Of a stretch of 64,000 nt of DNA, positions 12,104-38,024 are shown one piece after another (positions within the stretch are counted from its first letter, which is position 1; every line of letters begins with the position of its first letter). Both the position numbers and the translations under genes were made by a program. The stretch is from Epithemia pelagica (taxonomy: Eukaryota; Protista; Bacillariophyta): contig OX337231.1 of NCBI GenBank assembly GCA_946965045.2, positions 2,294,001-2,358,000 on the forward strand. The letters run 5' to 3'. Under the pieces are notes generated by a model, which ran no database searches, was not told the DNA's origin, and worked only from the letters and a program-made list of their open reading frames with translations.

Positions 12104-15100
12104 TTAAGTGAAAGAAGTCGAGCCTTCGTCCCGGAATGATTCGGATAACGAAAACGAACTGTCTGTGATGGACGACCGGGATATGGTTCCAAGACGTTTG
12201 TGCTCAATGTCGTTCGAGTTTGAAGAAATCAGTGGATTGGGATTGTTAGTCGGAGATGTGGACATTTTTGTCGGAGCAGTATTTTGTGAAATTCGTGGAG
12301 CATCATTTCTCATCTGTACAGGTGAAACAGATGCATCGTTTTGTGTCAGCAATGACGGAACTTCATCCTTGGGAGTTTGGTCGGAAGCCGCGTTTGTGCC
12401 ATGACTAGGTTTTGGGGTTTGGGATTCACCATCTCTGCAAGATAAGTTTTCTTCGTTTGCATGCTCTCTCTTTATGGCGTCCGCTTCCCAAAGCCCGTCG
12501 CTTGGTGGAGCTACATCATCCGTAGTTCCATCCGGTGTGTCCTCCTCTTCAATCACCGTCATTGGTTCCAGACGGTGGTCTGTCTGATCCTCTGAAATAT
12601 CCGTTGGCGAAGGAGGAGGCGTGGTGGTTCCGGCTTCGGCTTCTCCACTGTTTTTACTACCACTTTGCGTCCGGGCCACTTGATCGGCAAACATCTTCAT
12701 GTCACCACCCACACCGGAAATTCTAGTCTTGCCCAAATCAGTGAGCGAAAAACGACGAAAGGAATTGGATCGGTGGACGGAATCATTTGCGGAGGAAAGG
12801 GAATCCTGACGGAGTTCTCGAGATCGTACTTCACTGGTTAAGCGTTGTTCGGCACGTCGTTGTTGCACCAAAATGGGAACAAAAATAAGCAACAACATGG
12901 ACATGCAAACGGCAAATGTCAAACCGGCTGTAATGAAATATCGTGCCGATGGATTGTCCTTGTCAATGAGAAACAAGACGGGTATGCCGATAAGAAAGAG
13001 CTGGACCCAACTGAACAGGGCCACGCCCAGGTTTCGGCTTTCGCTAAATTCATCGCTGACATCTCGGGCACGGTAGGCTTGATAGCACACAACCAAAAAG
13101 GCGGACAAGTTTACGATGCCCACGACGCAAATCATGGCGACGGAAACGGGACCGTCGGCTGCACGGCAAGCTCCATAACTTTGATTGACTTGTCCTTCAA
13201 TTTCGTTGCGTTCCCATTGTAAGGGATCCACCAGGGTCCACGTCACCAGAGCCCAAAAATTGATGATAAACAAAATGGCAAAGGGTGCAATCACATCCTT
13301 TTCCTTGACTCGTATTCTGCGAAGCTGTGAGTTTTGAAAGAGTTTGTTGATTCTCCACAATTTGGAAAAGAGGGCCGACATGGCAATGGTAAAGCCCATA
13401 CTGACGAGCCACGGTACGGCCATGCAAGCCTTGCCGGCTGCGTCGGGCGAGACGATCTCATCGTCAAAACCCATTGGAATCAAGGCCATACCCATGACCA
13501 AGACACCCACGGCAATCATGGCCAAAAAGAGAGGTTGCAAGGTTCGAACAATTCGTGTGTTACGATGCTGGATAACCCAAACCAACAAAAAGAGGGCCGT
13601 GGCAATCACAATGCCCGAGGCTACCCATCCCACAACACGGACTGGTCCCAATTGATTCAAATCTTGATCGGGAATAATCCGGGCAATCAAATCAAAGGTA
13701 GAATCGGGACGGGTGCATCCCGGATATTGATCTTCATTGATAATTCCAAAAATGGCGGCCCCCGTGGCTGTTCCGGGTTCCAAGGCATCGATTTCCACGG
13801 TGACCATTAAGGTAACTTGCTCTCCTGCCACGAGATTTTCAAACAAGAGTTTCTTTTTGTTGGTGCCGTCGTCCTCATCGGACGCTTCGGACGATGGGTC
13901 TTGGCCTTGACGAGGGAGTGCTTGAACCTGAATCCAAAAGGGCAAGGATCGAACCACAAAGGTCACATTGTAGGGCAACGTATTGACAAAGGATATGCTC
14001 ATGTTCAACGACGACGAAGACGTCAATGACAGTGGCGATTGACCCAGTTCTCCTTCAAATTCCAACACATCCTTGAGAAAGACGACTCCCGGAGTTTCCG
14101 GACACGACCAACAGGTAAATTCTTGGGCATTCCAAAACTCGTTCCCCGCACAGGAATCGGCCGTTTGCACGAGATTCAACACTTGCCGGGCCGGGCTGGT
14201 GGTATCATTGACCATGCGTCCTTCCACGGTAGGAATATAGGTGGTATTGGAATACAGGGTTTTCAAATACTCGGCCACGATTTCTTGTTGAATGATTGAG
14301 CCATCCAGCTGTCCCGCTTGTTCGCCCGGAAAGACCAAACGACTATTCAAATAGGGGACAAAGTCATCAAATCCAGTACACACAAAACTGTCTGTGGCAA
14401 ACTTGTACAATTGCAAACGTTCCACGGGCACATAGTCGTTTCGAGTATCATCCCAAATATCCAACGCAAACAATCGAGATCCGGTCAGTTGGGTGTTGTA
14501 CGTTAATCGCAATCCAGACACTTGCAACAAATAGCCACCGAGATTGGTATTGTGTCCTTCAAAGGTCGCTTGTGACAGAGAATAATTGAAGAGTTGAAAG
14601 AGCGACACCCCACTCATGACACCCTTACACACATTGTTGGCAAAGGGCAACAAATCCCACAAATTGGAAATGTGAACGGGTCCTTCGGGCCATCCATCGC
14701 CACGAAAACCACCACTCGTGGCAAAGGCCAGTTCCGCCCCCGTATACCATCGGAGGGCATCGACAAAGAGAGATCCGGATTCACATTGTCCACCCTTGCA
14801 GCGTCGATAATTGCCTTCTCGTTGGAGAGGCATGGCGATACTGTGGGGTGCCACAACGGGGTCATTGTCCCGTGCTTCCGCGGCCAATTCGGCCAAGGCC
14901 ACCAGTGTGGCATTATATTGATCGTCTCGCACTTGGGGAGGAATTTCCGGCAAGGAAAAGTTCAAATCGTGAACCTTGACTTGAACGTCTTGAATCGAAG
15001 TGGAACTCAATGTCAAGACATGATGTTGATAGCGTTCATCGCGCAATCCAATACTGACCAACCACGTGGACGGTCCCACTTTGCGTGGTTCATTCAAGGG

Positions 15101-15928
15101 TGGTGCGTTTTCAAACACATCCAAAATCAAGGCCGGAGGATGGGCATGCTGCAAGACGGCTTGAATCAATTGTTCCAATTTCTCCTTGACATCGGCAAAA
15201 ATAAGAATGGGAATCCAACAAAAGGGATCGTCGTCGATTGTCGGAGGGTTGTTGTCTGTAGTACTAGTAGGGGGTTTCGGAAATCGACTCGTGTATTCGC
15301 CATAACAACCGGCTTGTTGGTTGATGCGAGCGATATAATCCAGTCCCCCCAACACGGTATCCAGTTGCGGTGTATTCATGGGTTCATTGGAATTGACAAT
15401 CGACATGCACGCCAATCGTGTTTCGGCATGTTGCAACAGGGCTGTATGATAGGAATGCCAGGAATTGCCCAAGGGGACTTGGACATTGGACAATAAGAGA
15501 GGCAAATCCTGCGATTGCAAATCGGAAATATCGCGTTGCGAGACATTGGAATCCACCTTGTTTTGTTGCAAAATGGAGGGTGCCGTCAAAAAGGCGGACG
15601 CATTGCACCAATATTCATAAATCAATCGATTGACACTCCAACCCAGGGGACTCATTTGAACAAAGGGACTTTCGCGATCCAAAAAGGGCAAAAACAATCG
15701 TGGTTCCGTGCCACTGTACGCTCGCGTCAAGGCGGCCGCCGCGGCGACACCTCCAAAACAAGTGGGGTCGTCGGGACCGGTGCATTGCGTCAAGGAACCA
15801 CTCAACAACGGAGCTGGACTCGCAACCAAATGAACGCGTTGCTCGACTGACGACAGGACACAATCCGTGGCCCCCAGGAGGAGAAAGAATCCAAATGAAA
15901 ACCAATGAAAGGAGCGCGAGCTTCTCAT
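12104..15928 (-). CDS. Class C (GABA-B-like 7tm_3) GPCR with 5'-nucleotidase-fold ectodomain
   Basis: Signal peptide. CD73/UshA-like motifs CxxxxxxxCFGGVA, LLLSNV, ESGSLFVDA, TSGGFRG, LLPFAN, LQVSGLRLTY, YKFATDSF, PTVEGR. Then a Cys-rich linker and a beta-rich domain. The 7TM region has RIVRTLQPLFL, CMAVPWLVSMGF, ALFSKLWRINKLF, FSESRNLG. Disordered C-tail. Confidence 0.85.
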   Translation of the reverse strand: MRSSRSFHWFSFGFFLLLGATDCVLSSVEQRVHLVASPAPLLSGSLTQCTGPDDPTCFGGVAAAAALTRAYSGTEPRLFLPFLDRESPFVQMSPLGWSVNRLIYEYWCNASAFLTAPSILQQNKVDSNVSQRDISDLQSQDLPLLLSNVQVPLGNSWHSYHTALLQHAETRLACMSIVNSNEPMNTPQLDTVLGGLDYIARINQQAGCYGEYTSRFPKPPTSTTDNNPPTIDDDPFCWIPILIFADVKEKLEQLIQAVLQHAHPPALILDVFENAPPLNEPRKVGPSTWLVSIGLRDERYQHHVLTLSSTSIQDVQVKVHDLNFSLPEIPPQVRDDQYNATLVALAELAAEARDNDPVVAPHSIAMPLQREGNYRRCKGGQCESGSLFVDALRWYTGAELAFATSGGFRGDGWPEGPVHISNLWDLLPFANNVCKGVMSGVSLFQLFNYSLSQATFEGHNTNLGGYLLQVSGLRLTYNTQLTGSRLFALDIWDDTRNDYVPVERLQLYKFATDSFVCTGFDDFVPYLNSRLVFPGEQAGQLDGSIIQQEIVAEYLKTLYSNTTYIPTVEGRMVNDTTSPARQVLNLVQTADSCAGNEFWNAQEFTCWSCPETPGVVFLKDVLEFEGELGQSPLSLTSSSSLNMSISFVNTLPYNVTFVVRSLPFWIQVQALPRQGQDPSSEASDEDDGTNKKKLLFENLVAGEQVTLMVTVEIDALEPGTATGAAIFGIINEDQYPGCTRPDSTFDLIARIIPDQDLNQLGPVRVVGWVASGIVIATALFLLVWVIQHRNTRIVRTLQPLFLAMIAVGVLVMGMALIPMGFDDEIVSPDAAGKACMAVPWLVSMGFTIAMSALFSKLWRINKLFQNSQLRRIRVKEKDVIAPFAILFIINFWALVTWTLVDPLQWERNEIEGQVNQSYGACRAADGPVSVAMICVVGIVNLSAFLVVCYQAYRARDVSDEFSESRNLGVALFSWVQLFLIGIPVLFLIDKDNPSARYFITAGLTFAVCMSMLLLIFVPILVQQRRAEQRLTSEVRSRELRQDSLSSANDSVHRSNSFRRFSLTDLGKTRISGVGGDMKMFADQVARTQSGSKNSGEAEAGTTTPPPSPTDISEDQTDHRLEPMTVIEEEDTPDGTTDDVAPPSDGLWEADAIKREHANEENLSCRDGESQTPKPSHGTNAASDQTPKDEVPSLLTQNDASVSPVQMRNDAPRISQNTAPTKMSTSPTNNPNPLISSNSNDIEHKRLGTISRSSITDSSFSLSESFRDEGSTSFT

Positions 15929-32989: not shown

Positions 32990-33883
32990 AGATGACATCG
33001 AATCCCAGTTCGGACAGCAGAATAGAATAAGAATATTTATAGGGACTACTTCTTCAGTCACAGTTCAATTTGAGTGTAGGGCCAGAAGAAGAAGAAGGTT
33101 CTACTGTTTCTGGTAGAGTCGGCTCCTCTAACCTTTTTCGTCGAGAGACTCGTTTTCAGAAAATGCATTCTTTTCCTAGAACTGAAGGACCTACCCACAG
33201 TCGTCGGTCGTCGGTACTTTCTTCACACGCATTTACTATGTAGAGTTGCCCTTTTTCTCAGAGGCACGCAACAAGTTTGAAGCAACAACAACAAAGCTTC
33301 TATCCAGCTAGATTGAGACCCATGTCCGTCAACTATTTGGATCAATGTTCAGATCTCGAAACAGAAAACAAGTGATCATTCTTCCTGGAAAACGTCAAAG
33401 TTAGAGATCTTCTTTCGGCGGGATAGCAAATAAGATAGAACAAGTAGAACTTGGTGGGGTGTGCGATTGGTCAACTGTCCCCCACCAAATTGAGACTACT
33501 AGCAGTATTCTAATCTTACTTTGGTCTAGGAGGAGGATTTAAATACATACTCCTACTCCTACCTAGGAGTAGTATCTTTCACGGCGTTTATTTGGTATCG
33601 CATCCTACCTCCTCTCCGATCAAGATGGACTTTTTTATTCACGAGATAACAACATAATCCTGGTCTAATCGTTTCTGAGTCCTCCACTGAAACTATATCG
33701 GACTCGGCCGCTCCTCTGTCCGCCAAGGGGACATCTACATTATTTCTTGACGGCAATGTATCTCATCTTTGGATTCGGAGACTCGCCGACTATTGGACCG
33801 TGCCCCGACCCCAAACGTCACTACGACCTCGATAGGACGTAGAGGTCATCTATTTAGTTCCTCTAAAGTTTCGGAGTGGGGTG

Positions 33884-35809
33884 TCATGACACGGTATCAT
33901 GTTCCGTCATATCTTTCTTGTCGCCAAGGATTCCCTTACACAATAGAATATGGTCCTTGAGATTCAACTGCTGTTGGGACCCAAACTTGCGTTCATTGAC
34001 CGAGATCAATTGTTGATTGGACTCGAGAAATGTTTTCCAGGAGGCAATGGCCCAGGATGGGGACAAGCTGTGTTGTACCAGTAGCAAACTGTTGTCATGG
34101 TCGTCGTCGTCGTTGTCCTGGTCCAATGGTGTGTCGTGGTTGGTACTCGTCATTTGCGCCGCCGCCGCCATGTCCCACGACGTCCATGGGTGCCAGTGGA
34201 TGGGTGAATTCCCGACACTCTTGGTGGCGCTGATTGTTGGTTCTTTGGTTGGGTGGTGGTGGTGCGAAGAATCGGCATTGGTATTGGCGGTTGTGATCGT
34301 TTTGCGGTCCTTGTCACTTGCTTTGGTTCGTGTGAATTTTGTGGGAGCCAGCATGCCCACGACAATTCCATAGTGAGCACCCTGTCCTTTCAGTTGCGAC
34401 GGTTGTTTGGTGCAGGGATTGGAATCGTAGGGGAGAATCCACAGGGACCCGTGGTGTACCAGTTGGTGATAGAGGGTACGGACCCACACGTGGTCGTCGT
34501 TTCGAGTGGAGTACAATTCACACTCCAATCCACACACGTCGCGTGCCAAGGTTTGCAAGTGACGGATATCAAAGACTTCTCCATCCTGGGTATAGCCCCG
34601 GTCACGGGCCACGGTCAACAAGGACGGGCATGGCACATTGTCTGGTTCCGAAGTAGTACTCGTTGGAGGATTGAAAGGTCTGCCATTGTTGTTTTGTGGG
34701 TGGTGGTGGTGGTGTACGAAATAGTCTCGCACCATGCGCAAGGCAGCCAATCCACACGAAGGACCAATTTGGGCTTGCCAGGGCACGGAATGGAACTGAT
34801 AGCACCAGTCGACAACCCTACTACTACCACCATTCTGGAACAAAAAAGAAGAAGCAGCAGCAGCAGCATGGTCCCGCCGCCACCACCGCATGGTTGGAAT
34901 GGCGTGTTCCAGTTCTTGGAACCGCGTTTCGACTGGAACCTGTAGGGACGACCCCGTTTCTTCCACCAAGCGTTTGCACAACCATACATCGGTTTCTTGT
35001 TGTTCTTGCGGTTGCTCATCGTTTGATTCGCCAGAGGACGACAAGAGTGGAATGACTTCCTGTACCGGTCGTTGCGATTGTGCTGGTTCTGTTAAAGCGG
35101 TTGTGGCTTTTCGGGATGATATCGGTTGCGATTTTTGTCGAATCATGTCTTCCAAAGATTGGACTTGATGGGTGTGCAAGGATTTGAGACAGGTTCGTTT
35201 CAGCGAGACTCGGTGACTGGGTTGATATCCCAAGTGTCGACGATAAAAGTCCACGGCGGTTGTCGTCCACAAGTACAGGTACTGGTATCCGAGCCGTTGC
35301 GCTTCCTCTTGCAACACGGTCATGAGAATACGTCCCCATCCCCGTCGTCGATGAGCCGCATGAATCACCACAAAGGTAACGGCGGCCGCAGTGCCTCCGG
35401 CACTGGTAAAACAGTCCGTCAAACGACCATGTCCAATGACTTGACACGGTTCATGGGTACTGTCATGGCACAGCATGAGTTGGTAACTACAGGGGAGGCC
35501 TCCTTCGGAATGGTGGTGTGGGGTCACAATCTTGTTCTCAAATCCATTCGCAGCAGCACCACCACCAGAATTTGCCGTCGTTGAAGGAGGCGGAACCGTT
35601 TGGGGCCATTGTTGATGAAGCATTTCGACCGTTTGTGTCACCCACTCGTGGTTGGCTTGGACCAACCCTCCAGTGTCATTACGAGTATTGGTGTCATCCG
35701 TGTCTGGATGCGGCTCGTCGGAAACAAATTGAACCAGTCGATAGGATTGGTCGTCATGTTTCTGGTTGTGTGTGGATCCAACCGGTTTGTAATACAATCG
35801 GGAGGACAT
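33884..35809 (-). CDS. Fusion of an NAA80-like GNAT acetyltransferase and an ACTMAP (C19orf54/UPF0692)-like cysteine protease
   Basis: One intron-free ORF (ATG at 35809, open from 35941). GNAT part: MLHQQWP, VIGHGRL, RRRGWGRILM, LYLWT, DFYRRHLGY, DVWLCKRL. Protease part: QIGPSCGLAAL, RGYTQDGEVF, ILPYD, KGQGAHYG, ESNQQL. Confidence 0.85.
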   Translation of the reverse strand: MSSRLYYKPVGSTHNQKHDDQSYRLVQFVSDEPHPDTDDTNTRNDTGGLVQANHEWVTQTVEMLHQQWPQTVPPPSTTANSGGGAAANGFENKIVTPHHHSEGGLPCSYQLMLCHDSTHEPCQVIGHGRLTDCFTSAGGTAAAVTFVVIHAAHRRRGWGRILMTVLQEEAQRLGYQYLYLWTTTAVDFYRRHLGYQPSHRVSLKRTCLKSLHTHQVQSLEDMIRQKSQPISSRKATTALTEPAQSQRPVQEVIPLLSSSGESNDEQPQEQQETDVWLCKRLVEETGSSLQVPVETRFQELEHAIPTMRWWRRDHAAAAASSFLFQNGGSSRVVDWCYQFHSVPWQAQIGPSCGLAALRMVRDYFVHHHHHPQNNNGRPFNPPTSTTSEPDNVPCPSLLTVARDRGYTQDGEVFDIRHLQTLARDVCGLECELYSTRNDDHVWVRTLYHQLVHHGSLWILPYDSNPCTKQPSQLKGQGAHYGIVVGMLAPTKFTRTKASDKDRKTITTANTNADSSHHHHPTKEPTISATKSVGNSPIHWHPWTSWDMAAAAQMTSTNHDTPLDQDNDDDDHDNSLLLVQHSLSPSWAIASWKTFLESNQQLISVNERKFGSQQQLNLKDHILLCKGILGDKKDMTEHDTVS

Positions 35810-36632
35810 GTTGTCTCTCCACAAACAAGACACAAGAAGAAGGATGACAATGGGTGTTGGTATGTTCTCTGTGTTCGGTGGATCGGATTGATTGTGTGTG
35901 GAGCGAGTGTGATTGTTTGGGCGCATTTGGAGCATGGCCAATCCAGTCGCTTGGAGGGGGATTCGGGGGGTATCGGTCGCCTTAACACACGCACATGAGA
36001 CGCGGATTCCTTATTCCTTCCATTCCCCCAGCAGAAACGCGAAGCCATCTCCCATGACGTGGATTCCCTTTTTGGATGACGTAGGACAAATCATACTGTC
36101 GACTGAAAAGTAGTTGGAGAGAATCCATCGCGAAACGCGGGATGGTCCTTTTCCGTGTCTGTGTCTCACCATCATCTTTCTCATTCAACCAACCTTGTGG
36201 TCGGTCTTGGACTTTCTGGACGCGATATAGTATATCCCAGTTCGATTGGATTCGACACAATTGCATCCCGTAATCAAAGAGTTTCCCACTACTACCAAAC
36301 CCAGTCTGTTTTACCATGTCTGCCGCCGCAACAAGCAATGCCATTCGTTCCGCTGTGGTCAAAGGATCCAAATCATGGCCGCATCAAAGTCCTGCCTTGA
36401 CGGTACGTTTGTTGGTTTGGTTCGGTTGCGCTGACACCACCCAAGATTCGGTCGACGAATCCACGACGACGGAGACATGTGTGTGTGTGCCGTAAATCAG
36501 GATGGGTGTCGTCCTGTATGTTGTCGCGAGTTGCGTGTCTCATTCCAATTCCTTCTATTCTTTCTTTTTCTTGTGCAATCCTCCCTACACATTAACACTT
36601 GTTCGAATTGGCACATGTGAGCGCAGAAGGCG

Positions 36633-38024
36633 GTGGACAATGTCTCGAAATTGCAATTGTCACCCGAGCACGAACAACCCATGGGAAGTTGGTCGTCGGA
36701 GCAAATTCGCGAGGCCACCTCCGAGTCGGTCATGCTGACCTGGGCACCGGGCAAGGTTCGGCACAACACACCCATTATCACCCATGGCGAAGGCGTCTAT
36801 TTGTTTGACGACAAGGGCAACAAGTTTTTGGATTGGACCTCCCAGGCCGTGTGTTCCAATACCGGGTATACCTTGCCCCAGTCTGTCATTGATGCCACGA
36901 CCAAGCAACTGCAAGACTTACCATTTGTCTATGGTGGATTGGGCATTACCGAAGTGCGGGCCCGATTGAGCAAACTCATGTCGGACATTTTGCCCGGCGA
37001 CTTGCAAGGCATGGTCTTTCCCTCGTCGGGGTCGGAAGCCAACGAGGCGGCCATTATGATGGCCCGTCGTCATACGGGAAAATTCAAGGTGATCAACTGG
37101 TATCGGAGTTACCACGGTGGAACCACCAATTCACAACAGGCCACCGGTGACTTTCGTCGATGGTTTGGTGGCGATCACGTGCCCGGCTTTGTCAAGGCCT
37201 TTCACCCCTTTCCCCTCTTTTGGGATTTGGCCGGCGAAACCGAAGAAGAACGCACCCAAATGGCCCTCAACATGTTGGAAGAACAAGTCCTCAACGAAGG
37301 CCCCGATACCGTGGCCATGATCCAATTTGAATCCGTGATTGGGGGCGGGGGCGTCTTGATACCGCCGCCGGGATATATGCAAGGCGTTCGGGCCATTTGC
37401 GACAAGTACAACATTGTCCTGCACTGCGACGAAGTCATGGTTGGATTTGGACGGACCGGAGAATTGTTTGGTTTTCAAAATTATGAGGGCGTCCTCCCCG
37501 ACATTGTCACGGCCGCCAAGGGCATCACCTCGGGAACCCTCCCCCTCTCCATGACGGCATGTCGCAAGCACATTATGGAAAGCTTTGAAGACAAGGCCTT
37601 GGGATGGGGATCCACCTACCAGGCCCACCCCGTCGCCATGGCCTGTGCCTACGAAAATGTCAAGTACTTGATCCAAAATGACGTACTCGGTCATGTGCAA
37701 CGATTGGCGCCCACCTTTGAACGGGAAATGAAACGCTTGGCCGAAAATCATCCCTCCATCAAGCAATATCGTTCCGTCGGTTTGTTTGGATGTTTGGATG
37801 CCCACAATCCGGATGGATCCAATCCTCAATTGCAACATACGGCCGTCGACCAAGCCTTTGTCCAGTACAAAAAGGCGGTCGCCGAAAATGGATTGATTGG
37901 CTTGTTGCGTCCTCCCCACATGCATGTGGCACCTCCATTGGTCATTCAAGAAGACGAACTGTTGGATGGATTTGAACGACAAGACAAGGCCCTCTATGCC
38001 TTGGATGAAGGTTTGGGATTTTAA
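36633..38024 (+). CDS. Class III PLP-dependent aminotransferase (omega-amino acid/taurine/GABA-type); 5' end uncertain
   Basis: GEGVYLFDDKGNKFLDW, SYHG, CDEVMVGFGRTG, PDIVTAAKG (PLP Lys), GSTYQAHP. The listed start is GTG. The true start is probably ATG 36375 with intron(s) (GTACGT donor at 36403). Confidence 0.9.
   Translation: MDNVSKLQLSPEHEQPMGSWSSEQIREATSESVMLTWAPGKVRHNTPIITHGEGVYLFDDKGNKFLDWTSQAVCSNTGYTLPQSVIDATTKQLQDLPFVYGGLGITEVRARLSKLMSDILPGDLQGMVFPSSGSEANEAAIMMARRHTGKFKVINWYRSYHGGTTNSQQATGDFRRWFGGDHVPGFVKAFHPFPLFWDLAGETEEERTQMALNMLEEQVLNEGPDTVAMIQFESVIGGGGVLIPPPGYMQGVRAICDKYNIVLHCDEVMVGFGRTGELFGFQNYEGVLPDIVTAAKGITSGTLPLSMTACRKHIMESFEDKALGWGSTYQAHPVAMACAYENVKYLIQNDVLGHVQRLAPTFEREMKRLAENHPSIKQYRSVGLFGCLDAHNPDGSNPQLQHTAVDQAFVQYKKAVAENGLIGLLRPPHMHVAPPLVIQEDELLDGFERQDKALYALDEGLGF

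Follow-up and report, generated by a model that had tools for sequence, protein, structure and literature searches.

A diatom gene fusing an NAA80-like acetyltransferase to an ACTMAP-like protease: a putative two-step enzyme of protein N-terminal maturation

Identification of the fusion gene

In a stretch of 64,000 nucleotides of the genome of the diatom Epithemia pelagica (contig OX337231.1, positions 2,294,001 to 2,358,000; hereafter the window), a gene was distinguished whose single product joins two enzyme families: a GNAT domain related to the acetyltransferase NAA80 and, C-terminal to it, a papain-fold cysteine protease domain related to ACTMAP. The identities of both domains and the conservation of their active sites were established, and the fusion was found in diatoms, a haptophyte, a dinoflagellate and Toxoplasma. 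In animals, ACTMAP takes off the acetylated first residue of actin and NAA80 then acetylates the new acidic N-terminus, the two enzymes being encoded by separate genes. On balance, we lean toward the view that the fused protein may be a bifunctional enzyme that trims and then acetylates a protein N-terminus, with actin or an actin-family protein as the most likely substrate. The original prediction of one ORF containing a GNAT and then a papain-like domain was confirmed, since the ORF is uninterrupted and both domains are matched by Pfam; all of the motifs that it quoted were located at the residues given for them, including the catalytic Cys codon (34754-34756). Taken together, the motif, Pfam and PDB matches greatly exceed what chance would produce.

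Gene structure and genomic neighborhood

The complete coding sequence (33884-35809, minus strand; ORF list and translation) is a single exon specifying 641 aa, followed by a stop codon (33884-33886). The uninterrupted minus-strand ORF extends further (33884..35941). The ATG at position 35809 is the likely start codon, because the stretch upstream of it contains in-frame stops and indels of 4, 5 and 24 bases in a 94%-identical relative (L003), while the coding part aligns with this relative without frame breaks. Moreover, a Y-[RK]-K-V-G motif placed just downstream of this ATG is conserved in several relatives. A longer protein, starting at upstream in-frame ATGs and carrying an extra hydrophobic segment, was ruled out by the same stops and frame-breaking indels. 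No signal or transit peptide was detected at the N-terminus of the fusion protein, which points to a cytosolic location.

Contigs from four public runs, whose library types are not on record, are free of splice joints within the ORF, and those of run X2 are transcript-like, covering positions 33689-35735 only, with the flanks absent. These contigs give modest support to an expressed, intron-free transcript. The Ka/Ks ratio against the 94%-identical relative (~0.35-0.6) is underpowered at Ks ~0.05, and it was not used as evidence.

Several further features of the locus were recorded. Some 340 bases past the stop codon, 57 bases (33486-33544) are skipped in the contigs of three runs; the gap could be an indel between alleles or could belong to a neighboring transcript as a small intron. 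The divergently oriented neighbor (36633-38024, plus strand) is a class-III aminotransferase gene (PF00202 in the relative, L003 1781-3124), and this neighborhood is conserved. In L003, a gene whose product combines 5'-nucleotidase C-terminal and 7tm_3 domains is located ~1.9 kb downstream of the fusion gene, much nearer to it than a similar gene in the window (12104-15928).

The acetyltransferase domain

The GNAT domain (aa 52-292; 34934..35656, minus strand) was identified by PDB profile searches, Foldseek and an AlphaFold model built with 74 sequences (pLDDT 79.5), which has GNAT topology. It is matched by Pfam Acetyltransf_1 (E 1.9e-9), and NCBIfam returned generic GNAT matches only. The top two matches of the single sequence in the PDB are human NAA80 (5.4e-7) and fly NAA80 (0.0019). 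A profile of 30 family members retrieved NAA80 of the fly (7.7e-17) and of human (1.7e-15), followed by a Bacteroides GNAT (2e-8) and GCN5 (~4e-5). In Foldseek, the best matches of the model were human and fly NAA80 in the PDB and mouse and human NAA80 in Swiss-Prot; the margin over NAA10/11 was small, as expected for GNATs. No other GNAT family ranked ahead in any of these searches, in agreement with the earlier assignment to NAA80.

The motifs of this half include: (i) QQWPQ of the alpha1-alpha2 loop (aa 66-70; 35600..35614, minus strand), placed by aligning it with NAA80 of fly and human in HMMER; (ii) IGHGRL (aa 125-130); (iii) the acetyl-CoA motif RRRGWGR, of the form R-x-x-G-x-G (aa 154-160; 35330..35350, minus strand), which was read directly and aligns with RHRGQGFGK of fly and LRGRGFGR of human NAA80; and (iv) DFYRRHLGY (aa 187-195). 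The domain also shows the expected NAA80 architecture, with a long loop of low confidence leading into a last strand that is predicted confidently (DVWLCK, pLDDT ~89). The low-complexity loop (aa 206-273; 34991..35194, minus strand; pLDDT ~50-75) is poorly conserved among relatives, and the strand after it (DVWLCKRL, aa 274-281; 34967..34990, minus strand) has its W, K, R and L invariant or nearly so. The predicted strand occupies residues 224-229 of the modeled piece, and the NAA80 Foldseek alignments reach piece residue 229.

Thus, NAA80/NatH (human Q93015, PDB 6nas; Drosophila CG8481, PDB 5wjd/5wje) is the best match in both sequence and fold, sharing with the diatom domain the acetyl-CoA motif, the [EQ]WP motif and the invariant Trp in it, a basic residue in the GH[GA]RL strand and, ahead of the last strand, a long and variable loop. 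The diatom domain differs from NAA80 in being fused to a protease, and no polyproline (profilin-binding) stretch is conserved in the fused protein. Judged by these comparisons, the GNAT half is NAA80-like in descent and architecture.

The protease domain

The ACTMAP-like papain-fold cysteine protease domain (aa 330-628; 33926..34822, minus strand) was identified by Pfam and Foldseek. It matches ACTMAP-like_C (PF21646) with E 1.8e-19 and 70.7 bits against a cut-off of 27, the relatives scoring 45-78 bits. Its model (pLDDT 78.9) retrieved all six reviewed animal ACTMAPs from Swiss-Prot as the best fold matches (E 1e-12 to 3e-14, TM ~0.55), so that the proposed likeness to ACTMAP held in both sequence and fold; the next family was UfSP2 at 6e-3, a gap of ~11 orders of magnitude. 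The top ESM Atlas cluster for this half was a chordate 'Actin maturation protease' (TM 0.62). A solved ACTMAP structure was not found in the PDB, either by sequence search with the protease profile or by fold search.

The motifs of this half are QIGPSCG (aa 347-353), RGYTQDGEVF (aa 404-413), LPYDS (aa 459-463), GAHYG (aa 477-481) and ESNQQL (aa 596-601). Six residues show no variation among 76 diverse relatives: Gln347, Cys352, Glu411, Asp462, His479 and Ser597. Within the active-site stretch QIGPSC (34754..34771, minus strand), Gln347 (34769-34771) is likely to form the oxyanion hole and Cys352 (34754-34756) is the putative nucleophile. The latter appears equivalent to C132 of human ACTMAP, a match which holds if the 19 residues after the start of the Foldseek alignment (query 4 = human 113) are ungapped; C132 was shown experimentally to be the catalytic nucleophile of the human enzyme (PMC13367750). 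The PYD...AHY stretch (34373..34426, minus strand) contains Asp462 (34424-34426) and His479 (34373-34375), which are conserved also in stand-alone ACTMAP-type proteins sharing the same blocks.

Human ACTMAP (C19orf54, Q5BKX5) thus belongs to the same Pfam family and has the same fold, with the common blocks Q-x-G-P-x-C-G, G-[YM]-[ST]-x-x-G-E-x-F, P-Y-D, A-H-[YW] and S-N-x-x-L. In contrast to it, the diatom protease is placed C-terminal to a GNAT domain, has two long low-complexity insertions and lacks the proline-rich N-terminal extension. The His/Thr/Asp-rich insertion (aa 496-572; 34094..34324, minus strand; pLDDT <50) is species-specific and is absent from, or different in, relatives. In the regions 34094-34324 and 34700-34715, which encode species-specific His-rich and other low-complexity insertions, runs of G-to-T changes distinguish the allelic contigs, and the His/Gln tract may accordingly be polymorphic in length or sequence.

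The searches also bear on a different reading, according to which the protein combines a generic C39-like or papain-like peptidase, cleaving leader peptides or ubiquitin-like modifiers, with a GNAT acting on lysines or small molecules, and has no role in N-terminal maturation. The weak non-ACTMAP fold matches (UfSP2, phytochelatin-synthase-like proteins and C39 peptidases) and the generic NCBIfam hits are compatible with it, as is a lead from bacteria: large families of proteins annotated as 'GNAT family N-acetyltransferase/peptidase C39 family protein' (PF00583 and DUF3335), mostly from Pseudomonadota, have the same domain order. Only language-model features link these bacterial proteins to the diatom one (133 of them shared; score 0.92, short of the stated reliability level), and a specific kinship with them was rejected, as it finds no support in Pfam. 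Their protease domain is DUF3335, whereas that of the diatom protein is assigned to PF21646 and neither to DUF3335 nor to C39; the bacterial proteins are probably an independent, analogous fusion. Given also the lead of ACTMAP over all other fold matches and that of NAA80, by 8 orders of magnitude, in the profile search, we consider the generic reading improbable. A myxobacterial ESM Atlas cluster was observed to bear ACTMAP-like_C as well.

Substrate-binding residues and the putative substrate

In fly NAA80, the essential W36 orients the substrate, while R38 and the essential R43 bind its acidic residues (PMC5924903). Some of the functional positions are retained in the Epithemia protein: Trp36 corresponds to Trp68, which is invariant in 74 relatives, Lys73 corresponds to Arg129 of the GH[GA]RL strand, a conserved basic residue, and the acetyl-CoA motif (RRRGWGR) is intact. 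In contrast, both substrate-holding arginines of the fly enzyme are absent. Arg38 is replaced by Gln70 (Arg in 31 of the 74 relatives) and Arg43 by Phe90, in a column that is our own reading, as the HMMER alignment of this loop has a gap; here the diatom clade has Tyr, and Arg is present in 28 of the 74, all of them non-diatom (haptophyte, dinoflagellate and others). Two further replacements are Phe146 for Ser88 (Tyr or Phe in relatives) and Trp181 for Ser124 of the residue-1 pocket (Trp in at least 90% of the 74). As judged from these alignments, the substrate pocket of the GNAT half is unlike that of animal NAA80, most of all in diatoms, and the change of the acidic-substrate residues in the diatom clade implies that the recognized N-terminus may differ.

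The loss of both arginines (Gln70 and Phe90) could also be taken to mean that the GNAT half has little or no catalytic activity and mainly serves as a docking module that brings the protease to its target, leaving in effect only a protease; the Ka/Ks value given above, underpowered as it is, goes in the same direction. We regard such a loss of function as very improbable, because the protein keeps the RRRGWGR motif, the GHGRL strand and a YLWT motif intact, and the family as a whole conserves them.

For the favored two-step enzyme, the following course may be proposed. The protease domain (Gln347/Cys352/His479) would take the blocked first residue off a folded substrate, after which the GNAT domain of the same chain would acetylate the freshly exposed amino group, both steps thereby being coupled within one polypeptide. 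We infer these activities, their order and the substrate from homology; the coupling follows Rosetta-stone logic, as homologues of two consecutive pathway enzymes are fused. To our knowledge, both animal homologues act on actin only, and it is for this reason that actin is favored as the substrate.

Data on actin N-termini from related organisms point in both directions. Actin of the rhizarian Paulinella was reported to be acetylated at Glu3 (PMC9237673), which indicates that processing of this kind exists in SAR (stramenopiles, alveolates and Rhizaria). The single diatom N-terminome considered here is that of Thalassiosira pseudonana, a species not established as a carrier of the fusion. Its actin (JGI 25772) was detected only as Ac-ADEEDIAAL..., starting from position 2, with 10 acetylated spectra and 0 free ones (PMC3774753, Table S5), and an Asp3 form of actin was absent from this N-terminome. 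Across the whole table, comprising 939 proteins, no N-terminus that starts at position 2 or 3 has Asp or Glu as its first residue, and proteins with Met-Asp and Met-Glu starts retain acetyl-Met (PMC3774753). There is thus no trace of animal-type processing in T. pseudonana. The supplements of two Toxoplasma N-terminome papers contained no actin N-terminal peptide.

These data, together with the remodeled pocket, make actin a leading but unproven substrate: the claim of actin processing is weakened by the T. pseudonana N-terminome and the lost arginines, but not refuted. The original prediction had described a Rosetta-stone fusion and concluded from it that a stramenopile processes its actin in the animal manner. 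That both enzyme families are fused is real, whereas the conclusion is not yet supported, given the Ac-Ala2 actin of T. pseudonana and the loss of the essential Arg in the diatom clade. The same observations are consistent with a two-step diatom enzyme retargeted to a non-actin substrate (an actin-related or unrelated protein), with conventional actin keeping its NatA-type Ac-Ala2. Retention of Ac-Ala2 in T. pseudonana (with the above limit on this species), the change of the Arg43 equivalent to Tyr or Phe in diatoms, the additional loss of the Arg38 equivalent in Epithemia and the Trp in the residue-1 pocket of nearly the whole fused family all agree with this alternative. However, no other substrate is known for either enzyme family, and T. 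pseudonana, not an established carrier, lacks any Asp or Glu N-terminus at positions 2 or 3, so we hold retargeting to be plausible but unlikely. The conflict with T. pseudonana makes the question of the substrate concrete and testable.

A comparable logic is known from plants, in which the Rubisco large subunit is processed by the aminopeptidase AMPP2 and then by the acetyltransferase GNAT7 (PMC13557074): as in the proposed scheme, a dedicated aminopeptidase is followed by a dedicated acetyltransferase, both serving one abundant protein. The plant enzymes are separate and unrelated and act in the plastid on another substrate, whereas the diatom fusion protein carries no targeting peptide, and a plastid (Rubisco-type) role was dropped on this ground.

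Distribution and evolution of the fusion

A search with the whole protein yielded 86 relatives, nearly all of them with both domains, and searching exhaustively with a profile of the protease half yielded 1193 proteins at E 0.001 or better. Both domain profiles were matched in 193 of the 226 relatives fetched, a distribution wider than was known when a search for this architecture in other stramenopile proteomes and transcriptomes was first suggested. The carriers include Epithemia, Pseudo-nitzschia multistriata, Cylindrotheca, Nitzschia sp. Nitz4 and a Bacillariaceae MAG, all of these diatoms being raphid pennates, as well as the haptophyte Prymnesium parvum, the dinoflagellate Polykrikos kofoidii and Toxoplasma gondii. 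The T. gondii fusion (P0189, 779 aa) carries no annotation beyond 'acetyltransferase, GNAT family protein'. Some of the fused relatives are complete ORFs from transcript assemblies (MMETSP, EukProt), which supports a single mRNA. Several apparently stand-alone proteases start with the last GNAT strand, which identifies them as truncated gene models.

This distribution decides against an artefact, i.e., adjacent genes joined by misassembly or read-through. Although no run contig spans the whole Epithemia gene in one piece, the ORF is uninterrupted, the same architecture recurs in ~190 independent proteins, including the complete transcript-derived ORFs, and even the truncated models begin with the GNAT strand. 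The artefact reading is thus close to refuted, and the observation of an NAA80-like/ACTMAP-like fusion is confirmed.

In the unrooted protease-domain tree, the diatom-type proteins form one well-supported clade, and three stand-alone proteins form a clade of their own, nested among the fused ones. As this tree has no root, fusion and fission are not separable from its branching. It contains no animal sequences, since the domain-profile searches of the protein database reached only fused kin or generic GNATs, and no animal ACTMAP or NAA80.

According to reviews, only animals mature their actin by means of ACTMAP and NAA80 (PMC11735805, PMC13557074), and an NAA80 orthologue was reported in some Amoebozoa by Drazic et al. 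(PMC5924898). The fusion had been presented as previously undescribed and, accordingly, no description of it turned up in the literature searched, i.e., papers on both enzymes or on NAA80 together with diatoms or Toxoplasma, with few subscription journals covered. A more far-reaching reading would regard the one-polypeptide ACTMAP-NAA80 as an ancestral or ancient form of actin maturation in SAR and haptophytes, including Toxoplasma. The supposedly 'animal-only' pathway would then be old, the animal genes may have arisen by fission, and the diatom pocket would have been remodeled later (Arg to Tyr), changing the accepted N-terminus. We put this scenario forward tentatively and consider it rather doubtful.

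If the fused protein does act as proposed, the origin of the actin-maturation machinery would be pushed far back in eukaryote evolution, the functional coupling of both enzymes would gain independent genomic support, and tractable organisms (Toxoplasma and diatoms) would be available in which one knockout removes both steps. T. gondii, whose gliding motility is driven by actin, would be a tractable organism for testing the function of the fusion.

Variant architectures were also observed. In one protein (P0083), an endonuclease/exonuclease/phosphatase domain is followed by the GNAT and ACTMAP domains, and in two others (P0077 and P0148) a PDZ domain precedes the ACTMAP domain.
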